From the sequence record NC_010821.1: 64,000 nt of DNA; one strand, 5' to 3'. Positions 8,386-17,833 of this stretch are shown piece by piece. Both the position numbers and the translations under genes were made by a program. The notes beneath the pieces were generated by a model. The model did not search any database. It saw nothing but the letters and a program-made list of their open reading frames with translations, and had not been told where the DNA came from. The stretch's first letter is position 1, and each line of letters begins with the position of its first letter.

Positions 8386-8421
8386 CATACGGCCAGTCCT
8401 TCGGGACTGGCTTTATGTTGT
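8386..8421 (+). terminator. terminator of capsid operon
   Basis: GCCAGTCC-TTCG-GGACTGGC-TTTATGTTGT. Confidence 0.85.
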
Positions 8422-11674: not shown

Positions 11675-13765
11675 ATGATGCATAACTTCAATCCAAACCA
11701 AGGCCTCCCGGTCCCATGCACTGAGGTAGATCCACGGTGGTTTAATAACAATCTTCCGCAAGGTAATGATTGCGTTCCACCGATCCAACTGAGTCAATGG
11801 ATGCAGGCCAACCAACCGGTTGGATTGATGGCTATTGGTTTGGTACGTGGAATGGCACAAGCCGCAGCCAATAAGTCACCGACTCATACGTTCGTTTATA
11901 ACCTGTTCTGTCAGAACGGATTTCAAAATCAGGTATGGCAGCAATGGTGTCAGACAGCTGTAGACTTCACTGAGTTTCTGATCATCGTTCGGCAATACAA
12001 TCCTAATGATGCTGTTAAGAAAGCTGCACAGTGTGTTGTAGAAGCTGCAATGGGTGTAGCGTTCCATACTTACCCAGTGCTTCAGCAAATTACTCCAAAC
12101 AACTTCTGGGCTGGCCTGCAAGGTGCTCAGCAGATGTACCAATCGATGATTAACGATATTCGTTCGCTTCGATCGGGTAATTACAATAACGGGATGCCAA
12201 GTAACCAGTGGCAGGGCGGTCCCCCGCAAGGTAACCTCCCACCGATTAATGTTCAACAACACCAGTCGTACAGTGGTTATCAGAATCATGGAACTCAGGT
12301 AACAACTCAAGCAACTGTCTCGAACTATCAGCACACCAACTCGTCTTATAGCAATGCACCCACCGCCACCAGTGGCGATGTTGCTAACTCGCTGTATGAT
12401 GTACCTGTAAACGAACCTGCTAAACCGCTGGTCCCTAAAGAAGAGATCAGTTCCGGTTATGACTATTACAGCACACCACTTCAACAGGAGTCTGCTCCAA
12501 TGCAATCTTTCCCACAAGCTGCAACTGTAGAAGAAACTACTCTTCCGATTCCATCTAACGTAGCGGAAGTCGTAGTTGACCCAACCTATTATCAACCAAC
12601 CGGTTTCAAACTGGACATCAACCGTGCATACGACTTGATCCATAACCCAGGTGGTATCGTAATCCAACCAGATCAACTGGTGGATTGGGAAATCACTGTA
12701 GGTGATGACACTCCATGGCCTCAGCTGATGGACCCTAACACCTATTGCCGGTTCTTGGTCAAATTCCCCGACGGTATTGTCAAAGAGAAATTCGTTGAAT
12801 GGACCGATGCAATGAACTATCTCCGTCACGAACTCGATGCAGAACTGCGTCGTAAAGCCCACCGCCCTAACGGTATTGTCGTATCGAGTGCAACTCCTAT
12901 CTCCACCATCGGTGGTGATGCAATGAATGCAACTGAAGTTGAATCGCTGGTTAAGGATGGTCACCTGTCCCGTAGCGCTGTACCGCCAGTAATCATCTCC
13001 GGTGTATTCCAAGGCTCGACTGATCTTGAGATCGAAGGTCAAGTCCGCGAAGAACTTTCCAACATGCTGGAAGTAAACTTCAACGATGACATTCCAATGC
13101 CAGCGGTAGAGTATCGTTCTCAGTTCACCCATACGCTCCCACTGAGCGATGAAGCGGTAGAGGCAATCAATGATATCCGTGAAGCTAAAGATCTCGGTCA
13201 AGCCGCCCAAGGTATCAAAGCACTGGCTGTTCAAGGTGTGATCTCCATCCGTGTGATGCATGCACTGAACAAACGTCTGACCGATATTCTGAATACCACT
13301 ATCGCTGATAGCATGGGTCTGACTTGGGCTATCGACGACTTCTGTGAAGAGTATCTGGAACTGGAAGACTTCATCGAACAGAAACGTGGCGCTGCAATGC
13401 GTCGTGTACTGCAAGGTACCGGCGAGCAAGTCCTCAATCGTGCACTGACTATCGTAGCAACTGACGATGGTGGTGAACACACTGCAACACTGTATCACGT
13501 TGTAGATAACTATCTGAACCATCAGGTAGGTTGGGACCTCGCTGATCTGACCACCCTGAATCTGAAATCCGGTAAGCCTGTACTGATCAGTGCTCTGGCG
13601 CACCCAGTGATTCTGGAAACTCTGAAAGGTATGATCACCCGTAATAACAAAGCTCGTGAAGAGTTTAACGCTACCCTGCGTGTTATCACCCGTGATGGCT
13701 TCTATCTGGAAGTCATCAAAGGTCGTCTGATCGAGAACGCTACTCTGTTGAAACTCGTACGTTAA
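11675..13765 (+). CDS. conserved hypothetical protein with Q/N-rich linker (phiKZ gp124 position)
   Basis: 696 aa, strong codon bias, co-transcribed with the RNAP subunit. Confidence 0.8.
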   Translation: MMHNFNPNQGLPVPCTEVDPRWFNNNLPQGNDCVPPIQLSQWMQANQPVGLMAIGLVRGMAQAAANKSPTHTFVYNLFCQNGFQNQVWQQWCQTAVDFTEFLIIVRQYNPNDAVKKAAQCVVEAAMGVAFHTYPVLQQITPNNFWAGLQGAQQMYQSMINDIRSLRSGNYNNGMPSNQWQGGPPQGNLPPINVQQHQSYSGYQNHGTQVTTQATVSNYQHTNSSYSNAPTATSGDVANSLYDVPVNEPAKPLVPKEEISSGYDYYSTPLQQESAPMQSFPQAATVEETTLPIPSNVAEVVVDPTYYQPTGFKLDINRAYDLIHNPGGIVIQPDQLVDWEITVGDDTPWPQLMDPNTYCRFLVKFPDGIVKEKFVEWTDAMNYLRHELDAELRRKAHRPNGIVVSSATPISTIGGDAMNATEVESLVKDGHLSRSAVPPVIISGVFQGSTDLEIEGQVREELSNMLEVNFNDDIPMPAVEYRSQFTHTLPLSDEAVEAINDIREAKDLGQAAQGIKALAVQGVISIRVMHALNKRLTDILNTTIADSMGLTWAIDDFCEEYLELEDFIEQKRGAAMRRVLQGTGEQVLNRALTIVATDDGGEHTATLYHVVDNYLNHQVGWDLADLTTLNLKSGKPVLISALAHPVILETLKGMITRNNKAREEFNATLRVITRDGFYLEVIKGRLIENATLLKLVR

Positions 13766-13766
13766 A

Positions 13767-13793
13767 ACATAAAGCCCCTCCTGAAGGAGGGGC
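13767..13793 (+). terminator. stem-loop GCCCCTCC/GGAGGGGC
   Basis: ACATAAA flank plus 8-bp stem right after the stop; no T tract. Confidence 0.7.
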
Positions 13794-13808
13794 ATCTTAG
13801 AGGATGTA

Positions 13809-14141
13809 ATGATGATCAAATTTAATCTTGCTGACAAAACTACCCTAGCTGGCCGTGAGGCTGTTGTTTATGAAGCTTTCGTAAAAGCACTTCGTGACAC
13901 TACGCTGTCTCGGGCCGGATTGGCTACAGCGATCCATCAGTCTCACCCGGCGATCAAAAACGTCTCACTGGTGGCGCTTAAAGGCGATGGTCCTAACAGT
14001 AGTACACTCCGTGCTAAGTTCTACGATGGTAGTACCGCAACTTTCCATTACACTACCTATACCACTGAAGAAATGAACGTACCAGACAAATGGTCCGCGC
14101 GAGTATCGGCTGGTCCAGATGGTGCCGTTACACTGCATTAA
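13809..14141 (+). CDS. hypothetical protein (110 aa)
   Basis: GAGGA RBS; bounded by two hairpins. Confidence 0.75.
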   Translation: MMIKFNLADKTTLAGREAVVYEAFVKALRDTTLSRAGLATAIHQSHPAIKNVSLVALKGDGPNSSTLRAKFYDGSTATFHYTTYTTEEMNVPDKWSARVSAGPDGAVTLH

Positions 14142-14147
14142 TCCTAG

Positions 14148-14173
14148 TGCCCTCCTTCGGGAGGGCATTATGT
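14148..14173 (+). terminator. stem-loop TGCCCTCC-TTCG-GGAGGGCA
   Basis: 8-bp stem, cUUCGg loop, TTATGT flank. Confidence 0.8.
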
Positions 14174-14185
14174 CATTAAAAGCTT

Positions 14186-14202
14186 TTTAAAGAGTATATT
14201 AC
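14186..14202 (+). promoter_or_regulatory. early promoter (TATATTAC)
   Basis: Exact phiKZ early-promoter core TATATTAC with upstream TTTTTAA, just before an RBS (GAGGTG). Confidence 0.7.
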
Positions 14203-14212
14203 AGAGGTGTAT

Positions 14213-14650
14213 ATGGAAGCAACCTTGACGATCACACGTGAAGGATCGATGTATGCTGATTTTCTGATGGACTCAGCTCCAGTTGGATTTGAAGACTGTT
14301 TAGAAAAATCAGAACTACTGCGCCGACTCCATTGGGGTCAGGCTTTTGCTGAACTTGGTGAACCGATCACCGATAATCTAATTGGTGACCCAGTAGCTAC
14401 ACTTCGTAGAATACATTGTCTTGAAGAGCGAAATATATGCGCCCATGTTACAATGCGTGTCATGGATCTATCAGGCGATCACCTACGAGCGTTCTTTAAA
14501 CCATACGGTCCAATGGCTGATAAACTCCGTGGACTCTGGCTAACCAATCCAACTGGGTTGAAAGCTAAGTTCCGTTACATCCAAGCTAATAATGATGAAG
14601 GCGATTTAACCGTCACCAACATCTATGGCATCGACGTCATTCAAAATTAA
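14213..14650 (+). CDS. head-maturation-protease-fold paralogue, predicted inactive
   Basis: SELLRRL..AELGEP, RRI..LEERNICAHV, FKPYGP, AKFRY, NIYGIDV mirror the gp175-type motifs as I recall them, but His->Glu and Ser->Lys. Confidence 0.65.
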   Translation: MEATLTITREGSMYADFLMDSAPVGFEDCLEKSELLRRLHWGQAFAELGEPITDNLIGDPVATLRRIHCLEERNICAHVTMRVMDLSGDHLRAFFKPYGPMADKLRGLWLTNPTGLKAKFRYIQANNDEGDLTVTNIYGIDVIQN

Positions 14651-14669
14651 CCAATAGGAAATTACCCCA

Positions 14670-15344
14670 ATGCGTATTGACAATACTAAAGTAGAAAGCT
14701 TCAAAAACTGGTTCTTTGGTCGTCCGAATATTAATTTCGATGACCTTGATGATCAGGCATTCAACGAGTTGTCGATCCATGTTGCAGCTGAGAGCGATCT
14801 GCCGAAAGAAGCAGACCCCGAGGCTAAATACTACGTCGAGGCAACTGGTGATACCTATCGCTTCGTCGATGGGGCTTATCAAGTAATAGATGTTTACAGT
14901 TTCGGTGTAACCCAAGCTTACCGTGACGCACCACGTCGCGTGTACGCCCGTGAGACCATTGTGGACCATTCCCATGGCATTCCATCGATCACCGCTGAAC
15001 AGATCCGTAACGGCGCTCCAGCCGGTTTGGCGACACTCTACAACATCCAAGCGTTGTTGATGGATCTTGAACAGATCCGTCGTATTGATGTTTACGGGTA
15101 TAAAACGACCTTGATGGATGTTTTGAGTCAGGGGGCTTATTCCACCAAAGAACAAAACGTTACACACTGGTTCTCCACTCAACACACTCTGTTGTATCGC
15201 CTGCTGGCGTCCAGCATGCGTGCAAAAGACGCGTTCAACAAATCTGTAATCGATGCTCTGTTCAAACACAACTACGTACTGACTTGGGACGATGCTAAAA
15301 ATCGCCCAGTCTTTAAAGTGGATGACTTCATCGTTTATCTGTGA
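14670..15344 (+). CDS. hypothetical protein (224 aa)
   Basis: AGGA RBS, phage-typical codon usage; no recognisable motif. Confidence 0.8.
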   Translation: MRIDNTKVESFKNWFFGRPNINFDDLDDQAFNELSIHVAAESDLPKEADPEAKYYVEATGDTYRFVDGAYQVIDVYSFGVTQAYRDAPRRVYARETIVDHSHGIPSITAEQIRNGAPAGLATLYNIQALLMDLEQIRRIDVYGYKTTLMDVLSQGAYSTKEQNVTHWFSTQHTLLYRLLASSMRAKDAFNKSVIDALFKHNYVLTWDDAKNRPVFKVDDFIVYL

Positions 15345-15351
15345 GGTGGTT

Positions 15352-15630
15352 ATGCGACTTAAAATCTTGGCTGTGTTATCGGTTGTACTATTGGCTGGCT
15401 GCAATAAGGAACCGGATCAAGTCATTGGTACACTGATGGCATCACGTTGTGATGTAGAGTGTGGTGTCGTCATTAACTCGAAAGGCATTGCCAATGATGA
15501 TGTTCTACGTGAGTTCAAAACCTGCGGTGGGGACAATAAAGATCTGATAGGTCGTAAGGTGATTGCCTTCAAGCAGAATCTCGTTCACGGTGAAACCTGT
15601 ATGACAGTATACGAATACCTACAACGCTAA
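15352..15630 (+). CDS. predicted lipoprotein
   Basis: MRLKILAVLSVVLLAG-C lipobox; GAGGTGG RBS; four additional Cys. Confidence 0.8.
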   Translation: MRLKILAVLSVVLLAGCNKEPDQVIGTLMASRCDVECGVVINSKGIANDDVLREFKTCGGDNKDLIGRKVIAFKQNLVHGETCMTVYEYLQR

Positions 15631-15639
15631 AGGTGCGAG

Positions 15640-16089
15640 ATGATTACGCTTGAAACTACAACATCGTTCGTACCTGCCTTCTCTGCGTTACCATTCATCA
15701 AATCTTTAAATCAGTACTATCCCGATATTGAATACTGGTATGTGAATAAAGTCATACCAGGCCTCACGTTAGGTAATGATAAGCTCATTGTCGCACGTGA
15801 TGAACACTTCAATATTGCTGGTATTGCTTTGGGTAAGTTGAGTGACGCTGAAGCGAAGTTGCGTTGTGTTCGTGTACACCCGGATCATCAGAATAGTGGT
15901 CTGGGTATTCGCCTGATCGACAACATGCTTGAGTTGATCGGCGAACGTAAACCTGGGGTGACTGTATCGGAAGAGATGATCAACCTTTACAGTCGTGCCT
16001 TCGTTAAACGCTATGGCTTTGAATTGTCCGACGTAACCAAAGGACGTTATCGCCGTGGCAAACTTGAATATGGATTCAATGGAGCGTAA
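15640..16089 (+). CDS. GNAT-family N-acetyltransferase
   Basis: Acetyl-CoA motif A: VRVHPDHQNSGLG; C-terminal F..RYGF. Confidence 0.85.
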   Translation: MITLETTTSFVPAFSALPFIKSLNQYYPDIEYWYVNKVIPGLTLGNDKLIVARDEHFNIAGIALGKLSDAEAKLRCVRVHPDHQNSGLGIRLIDNMLELIGERKPGVTVSEEMINLYSRAFVKRYGFELSDVTKGRYRRGKLEYGFNGA

Positions 16090-16467
16090 ATGGAATACCT
16101 GATCGACCTCTCGAAGAAAACGTCAGCATATCGTGAAGCATTGCTACGTTATCTGACTGGTGGCAAATACCAGAAAATCGGTTGCTATATGGAGTACCGC
16201 CACCCAACCAAACTTCGCAGCGAATCCCTAGATGACTTCATCCAGCGATACCATCAAACCGATGATCGAAACTGGTGTGCACGTGCCACTGACATCACAG
16301 TGGTTGGTGATGAGCTGGTGATCACGGTCACTCCTTTTGGGGTATGGAAAGATAGCGTTGATTTTGATGAACGTTGGCCTTCTGCGCGCATCATCCAGTT
16401 CAATGGTGAGGTTAAGGAAATCGTTGGGTTTGACTTGATCCTAAAGGCGAACCATAACGATTTCTAA
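16090..16467 (+). CDS. miniature head-maturation-protease-fold protein, catalytic His/Ser retained
   Basis: MEYRHP, F..RY...DDRNWCAR, VTPFG, PSAR, IVGFDLI align with gp175-type GELGHP / FSIR / IVTFD motifs. Confidence 0.6.
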   Translation: MEYLIDLSKKTSAYREALLRYLTGGKYQKIGCYMEYRHPTKLRSESLDDFIQRYHQTDDRNWCARATDITVVGDELVITVTPFGVWKDSVDFDERWPSARIIQFNGEVKEIVGFDLILKANHNDF

Positions 16468-16470
16468 GTA

Positions 16471-16522
16471 GACGACATAAAGCCAGCTCCTTCGGGAGCT
16501 GGCATATGCTGTTATTTTTTTT
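16471..16522. terminator. bidirectional terminator
   Basis: GCCAGCTCC-TTCG-GGAGCTGGC plus T tract, between convergent genes. Confidence 0.85.
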
Positions 16523-16953
16523 CAGTTTTCAGTGTATTCTAACGTAATAGAATCTGAAGGGAGGTACGCTAAACAGGCAGGTGTAGTTGCAATAGTGACA
16601 GTAGGACCTGAGATATTACGATCCAAGAATTCATTATCACTTAAAGGTACACCCAACGTATCACGTAATACCTTTAGAACATCGTAGAATCTCTTGTACG
16701 AGCTAGACTTGCCTGGAACCTTAATACCCCTAAGGTCTTCACTCAATCGCCGCCTAACGTAGTACAGTGTTTGAACACCACCGAAGTTATTACTGTCGGC
16801 TCTAGCCACAATATTAATTCGGGAATTACATTGACCCTGTAACCAAATCTCAGGAACGCTAAAATTAACGTCAGCTGGTTGAATTGGAGGCTTAACCTTG
16901 TTAGCCGTATTAAAAGCGGTTAGTAAACTTTGTTTGATGTCAGTGCTTACCAT
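16522..16953 (-). CDS. virion structural protein (Y-x-R-x-x-L paralogue family)
   Basis: ORF track 16522..16989; ATG at 16953 with GAGG RBS; SLLTAFNTAN..YYVRRRL. Confidence 0.7.
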   Translation of the reverse strand: MVSTDIKQSLLTAFNTANKVKPPIQPADVNFSVPEIWLQGQCNSRINIVARADSNNFGGVQTLYYVRRRLSEDLRGIKVPGKSSSYKRFYDVLKVLRDTLGVPLSDNEFLDRNISGPTVTIATTPACLAYLPSDSITLEYTEN

Positions 16954-16960
16954 GTTGACC

Positions 16961-17833
16961 TCAGTTATAGTGGAGCAGTAAATAACCACTCATGTTGTTA
17001 GCTAACCCACTGACCCGTAATACACACACCTGTTGAATGTCTTTACGTGGAGAGTACCGTGGCAACACGATGCCATTGTAAAGTACACTCAATCTAGCCT
17101 CACCTGAAATAACCTCACCGGCTATGTTCCAGTCCACCACTTCGGTACTACACACGAATGGATAAGTGGTAACATCATTAAGGATTGCTGCCAGCTTACG
17201 ACCACTCGGCCATACGGAAGCACTGGACAAGTCTTTGATGAATTCACGTTCATGGGTGAAATCAAAACCGCTAGTCGTAAACTGACTAACGATTTTACCA
17301 TCTACACTACCTAGAGGTCTAGGGTTAGCGGTGATGAGTTCTAATTTATCACCTACGTTGGCCAATAGCTGCTTAGTGGTATTGACCAGCTCGAATTGAA
17401 CTGATCCTACAAACCGCAATGACTTAGGTGACGCTGTCAGTGTATAGACACGTTGATATTCATCGTACTGTACATGGACAAAATCGTTCAATGTAAATAC
17501 GATGTCATTTAGTTCGCCAATAGCAGCGAGCACTTTAAACGTATTGGTAGGTAAAGCGAAGTCACTGAGTTGTTTGATAGCTGGACCCACAAAGAAACTC
17601 GCTAGGTCTAAACGATCGTAAACATAGTTCTCACGGGTAACCTCAGGTTGAGTGTTGTTTGGGTCGATGCTACGACGAGCATCAACCTCAATCTGTGTCC
17701 GTGTTCCACCCAAAGAAACCATCGATTTAAGTGTTGCGGTGTAAGGAGTCAAATCGGTGAGATACACTTCATTGATCCGATTGATCACAGCAACCCATGG
17801 GTCAGCTGCTAAATAGTCTTTTGTGCTATACAT
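16961..17833 (-). CDS. virion structural protein (phiKZ gp127-like)
   Basis: DPWVAVINRINE..YVYDRLDL motif; synteny before gp128/portal. Confidence 0.7.
   Translation of the reverse strand: MYSTKDYLAADPWVAVINRINEVYLTDLTPYTATLKSMVSLGGTRTQIEVDARRSIDPNNTQPEVTRENYVYDRLDLASFFVGPAIKQLSDFALPTNTFKVLAAIGELNDIVFTLNDFVHVQYDEYQRVYTLTASPKSLRFVGSVQFELVNTTKQLLANVGDKLELITANPRPLGSVDGKIVSQFTTSGFDFTHEREFIKDLSSASVWPSGRKLAAILNDVTTYPFVCSTEVVDWNIAGEVISGEARLSVLYNGIVLPRYSPRKDIQQVCVLRVSGLANNMSGYLLLHYN

Follow-up and report, generated by a model that had tools for sequence, protein, structure and literature searches.

The Pseudomonas jumbo phage 201phi2-1 is phiKZ-like, forms a nucleus and belongs to the genus Serwervirus. 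Its gp210 protein is almost certainly a truncated paralogue of gp268, the S80 prohead protease of the same phage. We lean towards reading gp210 as a minimal serine peptidase that has kept its activity and, produced early, remains free in the cell, and we give this reading a probability of about 0.45. Prohead proteases are normally confined inside assembling capsids. If gp210 is active, no smaller enzyme of the assemblin/gp21 fold is known, and it would work in the cytoplasm; if it is inactive, it would illustrate clearly how a virus can turn an enzyme into a binding module.

The stretch of DNA analysed here (the window, 64,000 nucleotides) corresponds to nt 124001-188000 of 201phi2-1, window position 1 being genome position 124001, and its 14000-17000 segment is 100% identical to this phage. 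Positions below are those of the window unless the genome is named, and the features discussed are collected in Table 1.

Table 1. Features of the gp206-gp210 cassette (window positions), codons of the aligned catalytic residues, and neighbours of gp210-like genes at related loci (positions within each locus).
Feature	Position	Strand	Description
Terminator hairpin, GC-rich	14149..14166	+	Putative end of the upstream gp205 transcript; followed by ATTATGT, like other hairpins of the region
Early-promoter-type motif (ATTAAAA..TTTTTAAAGAG TATATTAC)	14174..14202	+	Matches the extended motif at other 201phi2-1 sites
gp206	14213..14650	+	First cassette gene; second truncated protease paralogue, with Glu at the His and Lys at the Ser position
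gp207	14670..15344	+	Homologue of phiKZ gp125, unknown function
gp208	15352..15630	+	Small predicted lipoprotein; signal peptide ending L-A-G-C (...LLAGC)
gp209	15640..16089	+	GNAT acetyltransferase (RimI-like)
gp210 CDS	16090..16467	+	125 aa, ATG start; minimal-core paralogue of S80 prohead protease
His38 codon	16201..16203	+	Aligns with catalytic His90 of gp268 and His85 of T4 gp21
Ser98 codon, in P-S-A-R	16381..16383	+	Aligns with Ser176 of gp268 (S-V-R); S-x-R also in T4 gp21, at Ser140
Asp115 codon	16432..16434	+	Aligns with Asp199 of gp268; invariant in 17/17 mini-family representatives
Bidirectional terminator	16482..16522	.	Between convergent gp210 and gp211; hairpin 16482-16503, 9-bp stem with 7 GC pairs; T8 on + strand
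263-aa/122-aa neighbour genes, L005	632-1420, 1840-2205		
263-aa/122-aa neighbour genes, L007	1867-2655, 3102-3467		
263-aa/122-aa neighbour genes, L008	850-1632		
263-aa/122-aa neighbour genes, L009	1898-2395, 2796-3161		

The gp210 start codon is joined directly to the stop codon of gp209 (TAA-ATG) and has a GGAG Shine-Dalgarno sequence 5 nt upstream. The gene product is hypothetical in GenBank and a 'head maturation protease' in RefSeq, which gives gp206 (14213-14650) the same name; NCBIfam has no model for gp206, gp207, gp208 or gp210. Homology of gp210 to the prohead protease is correct but not new, and the earlier note on this DNA, which treated the protein as new, was overtaken by this name and by a family description from 2017. 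According to that paper, diverged and truncated prohead-protease paralogues occur in SPN3US (gp117), Erwinia phages, 201phi2-1 (gp206) and PhiPA3 (gp143) and are cryptic and presumably inactive; gp210 is not among the paralogues named (Ali et al. 2017, PMC5694885). Our literature search found no functional study of any member of this mini family. The RefSeq name over-states present knowledge for both gp206 and gp210, and for gp206 it is an over-annotation.

The experimentally supported prohead protease homologue of 201phi2-1 is gp268, a virion protein of ~280 aa with a full-length Pfam S80 match (1e-90). Its gene lies outside the window, 53 kb from gp210. The sequence record carries a virion mass-spectrometry remark for gp268 and for the gp210 neighbours gp211-gp219, and none for gp210. 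In this respect gp210 resembles the Chimalliviridae 'cryptic protease' paralogues (PHROG 7478), which are not virion proteins either. It also shares with them the family HMM (5e-32), a size of ~120-150 aa, a truncated S80 core without the C-terminal propeptide and the presence of a full-length S80 protease, here gp268, in the same genome.

The translation of gp210 contains, in the order given in the earlier note, the five strings MEYRHP (residues 34-39), DFIQRYHQTDDRNWCAR (49-65), VTPFG (80-84), WPSARI (96-101) and IVGFDLI (111-117). The consensus of 26 full-length S80 proteases reads E.KHPEP, Y..RIR.IDDDRVCAHIR, KP.GPFG, YFSVRSIT and EISTWDFVGEGG. Measured against this consensus, the protease motifs given in the earlier note were roughly right, except that 'GE.GHP' is nearer to the GELNHP of T4 gp21.

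The resemblance of gp210 to S80 proteases is far beyond chance. The Pfam Peptidase_S80 model (PF20034) matched gp210 with 26.9 bits (E 3.4e-6; gathering score 23.4), a match that spans only residues 28-74, the 47 residues around the histidine, and profile positions 60-106 of 229. phrog_7478, 'head maturation protease', matched residues 1-119 with 5.3e-32. BLASTP aligned residues 33-91 with residues 85-167 of gp268, and the identity to S80 proteases is ~25% over 60-80 residues. When the 17-sequence mini family was compared with the 26 full-length S80 proteases, hhalign returned a probability of 99.0% (E 2.7e-18, 110 columns) and placed gp210 15-118 on gp268 66-202; individually, 11 of the 17 family representatives match S80 at E<=0.01. 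The profile matches thus came out as the earlier note had expected of a prohead-protease relative and, together with the structural match to T4 gp21 described below, bear out its description of a stripped-down protease domain of the T4 gp21/phiKZ gp175 fold.

The family is small. An exhaustive phmmer search with gp210 over 1.84 billion representatives found 10 relatives only, of 123-136 aa, and a profile search beyond phmmer added the gp206 group. Among the open reading frames of the window and of a 40-kb flanking stretch containing gp268, the family HMM found gp210, gp206 and gp268 and nothing more. A word-indexed search returned gp210 alone, an IMG/VR search returned 201phi2-1 itself alone, and no relative was confirmed in a metagenome scan. 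Searching PDB chains by sequence alone with the family profile gave a best E of about 1, for MHC and RNAP subunits, and hhalign against the single T4 gp21 sequence aligned the His region alone, with negligible probability.

We modelled gp210 with AlphaFold2 from the family alignment (mean pLDDT 92.6, pTM 0.83). The BFVD model of gp210 superposes on it with TM 0.97, and the ESM Atlas has a model of its own (pTM 0.81), 122 of whose 125 residues superpose on S80 proteases (TM 0.78). In a Foldseek search of the PDB, T4 gp21 was the top hit but fell short of significance (E 0.15), so that VIA-align was required. In a Foldseek-independent comparison of the model with 48,161 PDB chains, T4 gp21 (MEROPS S77, PDB 5JBL) came top with Z 9.5, and a second-look alignment gave Z 9.8 with an rmsd of 2.5 Å over 106 residues (~105 residues and 2.5-2.6 Å in the two taken together). 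Residues 1-120 of the model span gp21 40-173, including gp21 H85, S140 and D168, although the two proteins share 11% identity, have no significant sequence-only match, and gp210 lacks gp21 residues 1-39 and the C-terminal tail. The next folds were the herpesvirus assemblins of VZV (1vzv, Z 5.7) and HCMV (Z 4.4-4.9, with 8j3s at 4.4), and the remainder was background. The gp210 model is thus a superposable beta-barrel of the assemblin/gp21 fold (clan SH serine proteases). Unlike gp210, herpesvirus assemblin is much larger and has a Ser-His-His triad; its activity depends on dimerisation.

As the full-length S80 comparison we used the model of P0019, a protein 89% identical to gp268. Every main strand and the three core helices of P0019 are kept in gp210, and what is gone are the N-terminal 50-60 residues, a beta-hairpin after the histidine, a helix before the serine strand and everything beyond the aspartate strand. 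Since the strands and core helices are kept and the peripheral elements are gone, gp210 as modelled is the bare barrel of the protease. With the P0019 model as query, T4 gp21 was not in the Foldseek shortlist and a second look gave no protease, while the 125-aa mini protein retrieves gp21 first; it seems that the peripheral elements of S80 proteases hide the common core from 3Di searches.

By alignment, gp210 has His38, Ser98 and Asp115 at the catalytic positions. The corresponding H90, S176 and D199 of gp268 are invariant in the 26 S80 proteins and match H77, S153 and D178 of SPN3US gp245, the triad that Ali et al. assigned to that protein, along with a triad for T4 gp21 (PMC5694885). gp210 shares with the S80 proteases (phiKZ gp175, 201phi2-1 gp268, SPN3US gp245) a homologous beta-barrel core and the E-x-x-H-P, R, C-A, P-x-G, S-x-R and D motifs. 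The E-L-N-H85-P of T4 gp21 aligns with E-Y-R-H38-P of gp210, and gp21 has the S140-x-R and V-D168 motifs too.

The surroundings of these residues are much reduced. Compared with S80 proteases of ~280 aa, gp210 lacks the N-terminal 60 residues, the internal hairpin, the helix, the G-E-G-G loop and the autocleaved C-terminal region; the hhalign alignment stops at gp268 residue 202, and gp268 203-280 has no counterpart. The C-terminal propeptide and the prohead and virion association that characterise S80 proteases are thus not found in gp210. It retains about 9 of the 39 positions that are >=90% conserved in S80 (E35, H38, P39, R53, P82, G84, S98, R100 and D115). Absent are K31, G33 (invariant), G41, Y42, G48 and N54 in the N-terminal part, N168/P169, S179 and T181 in the middle, and the invariant V-G-E-G-G loop, A209, K211, L217 and E218 after the aspartate. 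Hence, the 'apparently intact active site' of the earlier note is an over-statement, as some 30 of the 39 S80-conserved positions, including K31/G33 and V-G-E-G-G, are gone. The MAFFT alignment probably mis-registers the first strand of gp210; judging from the structural alignment, strand 2-6 with the invariant Tyr14 is probably the equivalent of the G-Y-Y-T-L strand with Tyr60. Arg65 of gp210, which follows the C-A motif, takes the place of a histidine (His128) that is invariant in S80; by motif correspondence T4 gp21 also has arginine there, so that Arg65 does not count against activity. Two further residues of gp210 have no counterpart in true S80 proteases: Glu110 (16417-16419), which is conserved only in the three lineages that keep both His and Ser, and His122 (16453-16455), part of a C-terminal-tail [ND]-H-x-[DS] motif present in 8 of 11 gp210-like proteins independently of the triad.

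A maximum-likelihood tree resolved three groups: the gp210-like minis (11 representatives, support 97/93), the gp206-like minis (6 representatives) and the true S80 proteases. gp210 is thus in a clade separate from gp206. His and Ser occur together in only four of the 17 mini-family representatives, namely gp210, P0002, P0012 and P0003, and the other 13 lack one or both. In all six gp206-like proteins the His column holds Glu and the Ser column holds Lys, and SPN3US gp117 lacks an aligned His. The presumed loss of catalytic residues described for the cryptic paralogues does not apply to gp210, in which all three are kept. Within the gp210-like clade, His is kept in five proteins and Ser in five, mostly according to a both-or-neither pattern (both in four, neither in five, one in two). 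The seven other gp210-like proteins have I, N, V, R, Y, Y and H in the His column and A, S, A, G, G, A and G in the Ser column. Apart from the start Met, nine residues are invariant in 17/17: E35, P39, R53, C63, A64, G84, R100, I111 and D115. Because most members lack His and/or Ser and these other residues do not vary, the function shared across the family is not catalysis, and Asp115, invariant also in members without His or Ser, gives no evidence of catalysis.

The lineages that kept the pair nevertheless show a pattern suggestive of selection. The terminal branches leading to gp210, P0002/P0012 and P0003 are each about 1 change per site long, and all of these proteins have kept both His and Ser. 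Fifty-four alignment columns vary freely in the other seven gp210-like proteins; five of these are invariant in the trio, and the His38 column is among the five. The Ser98 column holds A, G or S in other gp210-like proteins. The E-x-x-H-P and P-S-A-R contexts are strictly kept in the three lineages. As the branches are long and both residues are kept at columns that vary elsewhere, the alignment points to apparent purifying selection on the His38/Ser98 pair in the gp210 lineage, an argument that draws on three independent lineages, a small sample, in a clade whose internal branching is poorly settled.

These observations can be read in two ways that are nearly level. We lean slightly to an active peptidase because gp210 has the complete catalytic barrel and because selection has apparently preserved the triad together with the motifs around it. 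gp210 would then be a non-virion, minimal-core paralogue of gp268 that is produced early, remains free in the cell without entering proheads, and cuts as a small serine peptidase via His38, Ser98 and Asp115. Its specificity would probably differ from that of gp268, since gp210 has lost the N-terminal segment and the post-Asp loop, and candidate substrates are host proteins or early phage proteins. Cleavage at S/A/G-x-E sites, as suggested in the earlier note, is pure conjecture.

Alternatively, and with only somewhat lower probability, gp210 is a pseudo-protease whose groove serves as a binding surface that holds a peptide segment without cutting it, and His38 and Ser98 are relics or contribute to binding only. 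Such a protein could act as a regulator, a chaperone or a competitor of a protein otherwise engaged by a real protease or a host factor. This would account for the invariance of fold-defining and groove residues in a family in which 13 of 17 members have lost His and/or Ser, apparently independently in at least five lineages, and in which the gp206 clade has uniformly replaced both residues. It also fits the absence from gp210 of the N-terminal segment and the Gly-rich loop, which are invariant in real S80 enzymes, and the presumption of inactivity for the paralogues in Ali et al. 2017 (PMC5694885). What argues against it and for the active peptidase is that three long-branch lineages have kept both His and Ser, within strictly conserved E-x-x-H-P and P-S-A-R contexts, although the two columns accept many residues in other relatives.

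Sequence signals delimit a compact cassette of five genes, with an early-type promoter motif in front, a terminator behind and gp210 in last place; gaps of 0-19 nt separate gp206, gp207, gp208, gp209 and gp210. The gp205 gene is followed by a hairpin, then ATTAAAAGC-TTTTTAAAGAG-TATATTAC, which reaches to 14202; after AGAGG, gp206 starts at 14213. The exact octamer TATATTAC occurs once in the window. The same octamer, preceded by the same ATTAGAA...TTTAAAG blocks, is found upstream of small genes of unknown function elsewhere in the genome, for example at genome positions 4225, 19919, 22127, 42524 and 189878. Early promoters of 201phi2-1 have been described as conserved at -10, -20 and -30 (PMC11512511), and the motif before gp206 agrees with this description. 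The claim that gp210 lies at the end of an early-promoter operon was therefore sustained as to the motif, the terminators and the last position, and the early timing is a suggestion that comes from the motif. The octamer directly follows the terminator hairpin and ends 10 nt before the gp206 start, so that the gp206 leader would be very short and consist of the AGAGG ribosome-binding site alone. Within the cassette, gp208 could be a membrane-anchored exclusion or envelope factor; its PHROG matches to Rz-like spanins are weak and confined to the signal-peptide region.

The cassette brings a triad-keeping and a triad-losing member side by side in one operon, which amounts to a natural comparison. 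Because the two share an operon, gp210 catalysis lends itself to direct testing, and the phage, which forms a nucleus, already serves as a laboratory model.

Physically, gp210 lies between gp200, which encodes the major capsid protein, and gp211-gp220, which are virion genes. The earlier note had placed it outside the morphogenesis genes, and this is right in that it belongs to a separate early-type cassette 53 kb from gp268, but not in that it lies between capsid and virion genes. We therefore considered whether gp210 might be a morphogenetic helper, a prohead core or scaffold-like part or a modulator of gp268 that is removed before maturation and so is absent from virions. Its location among head and virion genes, its fold, which is that of a prohead-core protein, its placement in head and packaging by RefSeq and PHROG, and its BFVD structural neighbours, which include entries named 'prohead core scaffold protein', would all suit this role. 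We nonetheless regard it as improbable. The cassette promoter is early-type rather than late, unlike the head-gene context of S80 proteases, and the cassette is insulated by terminators. Moreover, gp210 lacks the C-terminal region that is cleaved off true proteases and for which prohead targeting was inferred (PMC5694885). T4 gp68 was examined as a precedent for a protease-derived core protein and dropped, as it has no sequence relation to gp21.

The genomic context in related phages also speaks against a helper of head assembly. Viktualia, the nearest relative, has the same cassette with the acetyltransferase gene last and no gp210 there. The gp210-like gene of this phage, with 30% identity, is found at 30 kb, next to genes for RtcB ligase, PRPP synthetase and NAMPT; in Phabio the gp210-like gene is beside the same PRPP synthetase and NAMPT genes, and the metagenomic contig with P0002 has RtcB and thymidylate synthase nearby instead. 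These are accessory genes and not head genes. In contrast, the gp206-type paralogue always adjoins a homologue of phiKZ gp125 (the gp207 type), in Viktualia, PhiPA3 and Phabio alike. Given these varied neighbourhoods and the absence from the Viktualia cassette, gp210-type genes are, as judged from gene order, mobile accessory genes with no fixed position and outside the head module. gp210 may have come by translocation from an RtcB block; 201phi2-1 was not among the best 12 RtcB matches listed. No TATATTAC-type motif was found within 4-6 kb of gp210-like genes at four related loci, and early expression can therefore not be generalised to all gp210-like genes.

That gp210 is a decaying duplicate without selected function, its catalytic residues merely not yet mutated, is the least credible reading: the gene is accessory, is absent from the Viktualia locus and has few homologues in very large databases, but its reading frame is intact, has a good ribosome-binding site and is tightly coupled to gp209, its fold is predicted with high confidence, and relatives at 26-45% identity have kept the same length and the nine invariant residues, which indicates long-term purifying selection.

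In related phages, gp210-like genes have RtcB, PRPP-synthetase and NAMPT genes as neighbours, which would fit an accessory, conflict-related role. The gp210-type minis might be early counter-defence or host-takeover factors, although we consider this unlikely: they would act on a host protein as free minimal proteases, or as decoys they would tie up host immune sensors designed to be cleaved by prohead proteases. For CBASS CD-NTases, activation through cleavage by prohead proteases has recently been reported (Hobbs and Kranzusch 2026, PMC12991175).

Some further observations concern the neighbourhoods of these genes. On the metagenomic contigs of P0002 and P0003 the gp210-like gene is directly flanked by genes for two conserved proteins, one of 263 aa that belongs to no family and one of 122 aa that corresponds to phrog_16193 and has a signal-peptide-like N-terminus. 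A few kb from the gp210-like gene, Viktualia has a homologue of the 263-aa protein only and Phabio has both. No homologue of either protein was found in the parts of the 201phi2-1 genome examined.

Within the window, a 653-codon open reading frame lies antisense to gp204 (11876-13837, minus strand). It begins with TTG, is unannotated and lacks support from any family, and so is most probably a random frame opposite a long gene. GC-rich hairpins with 4-nt loops, three of four of the TTCG type, recur at 8391-8412, 13774-13793, 14149-14166 and 16482-16503, with (A/T)TTATGT after them on one strand or on both. From their sequence they look like the standard terminator module of the phage, some copies being bidirectional.
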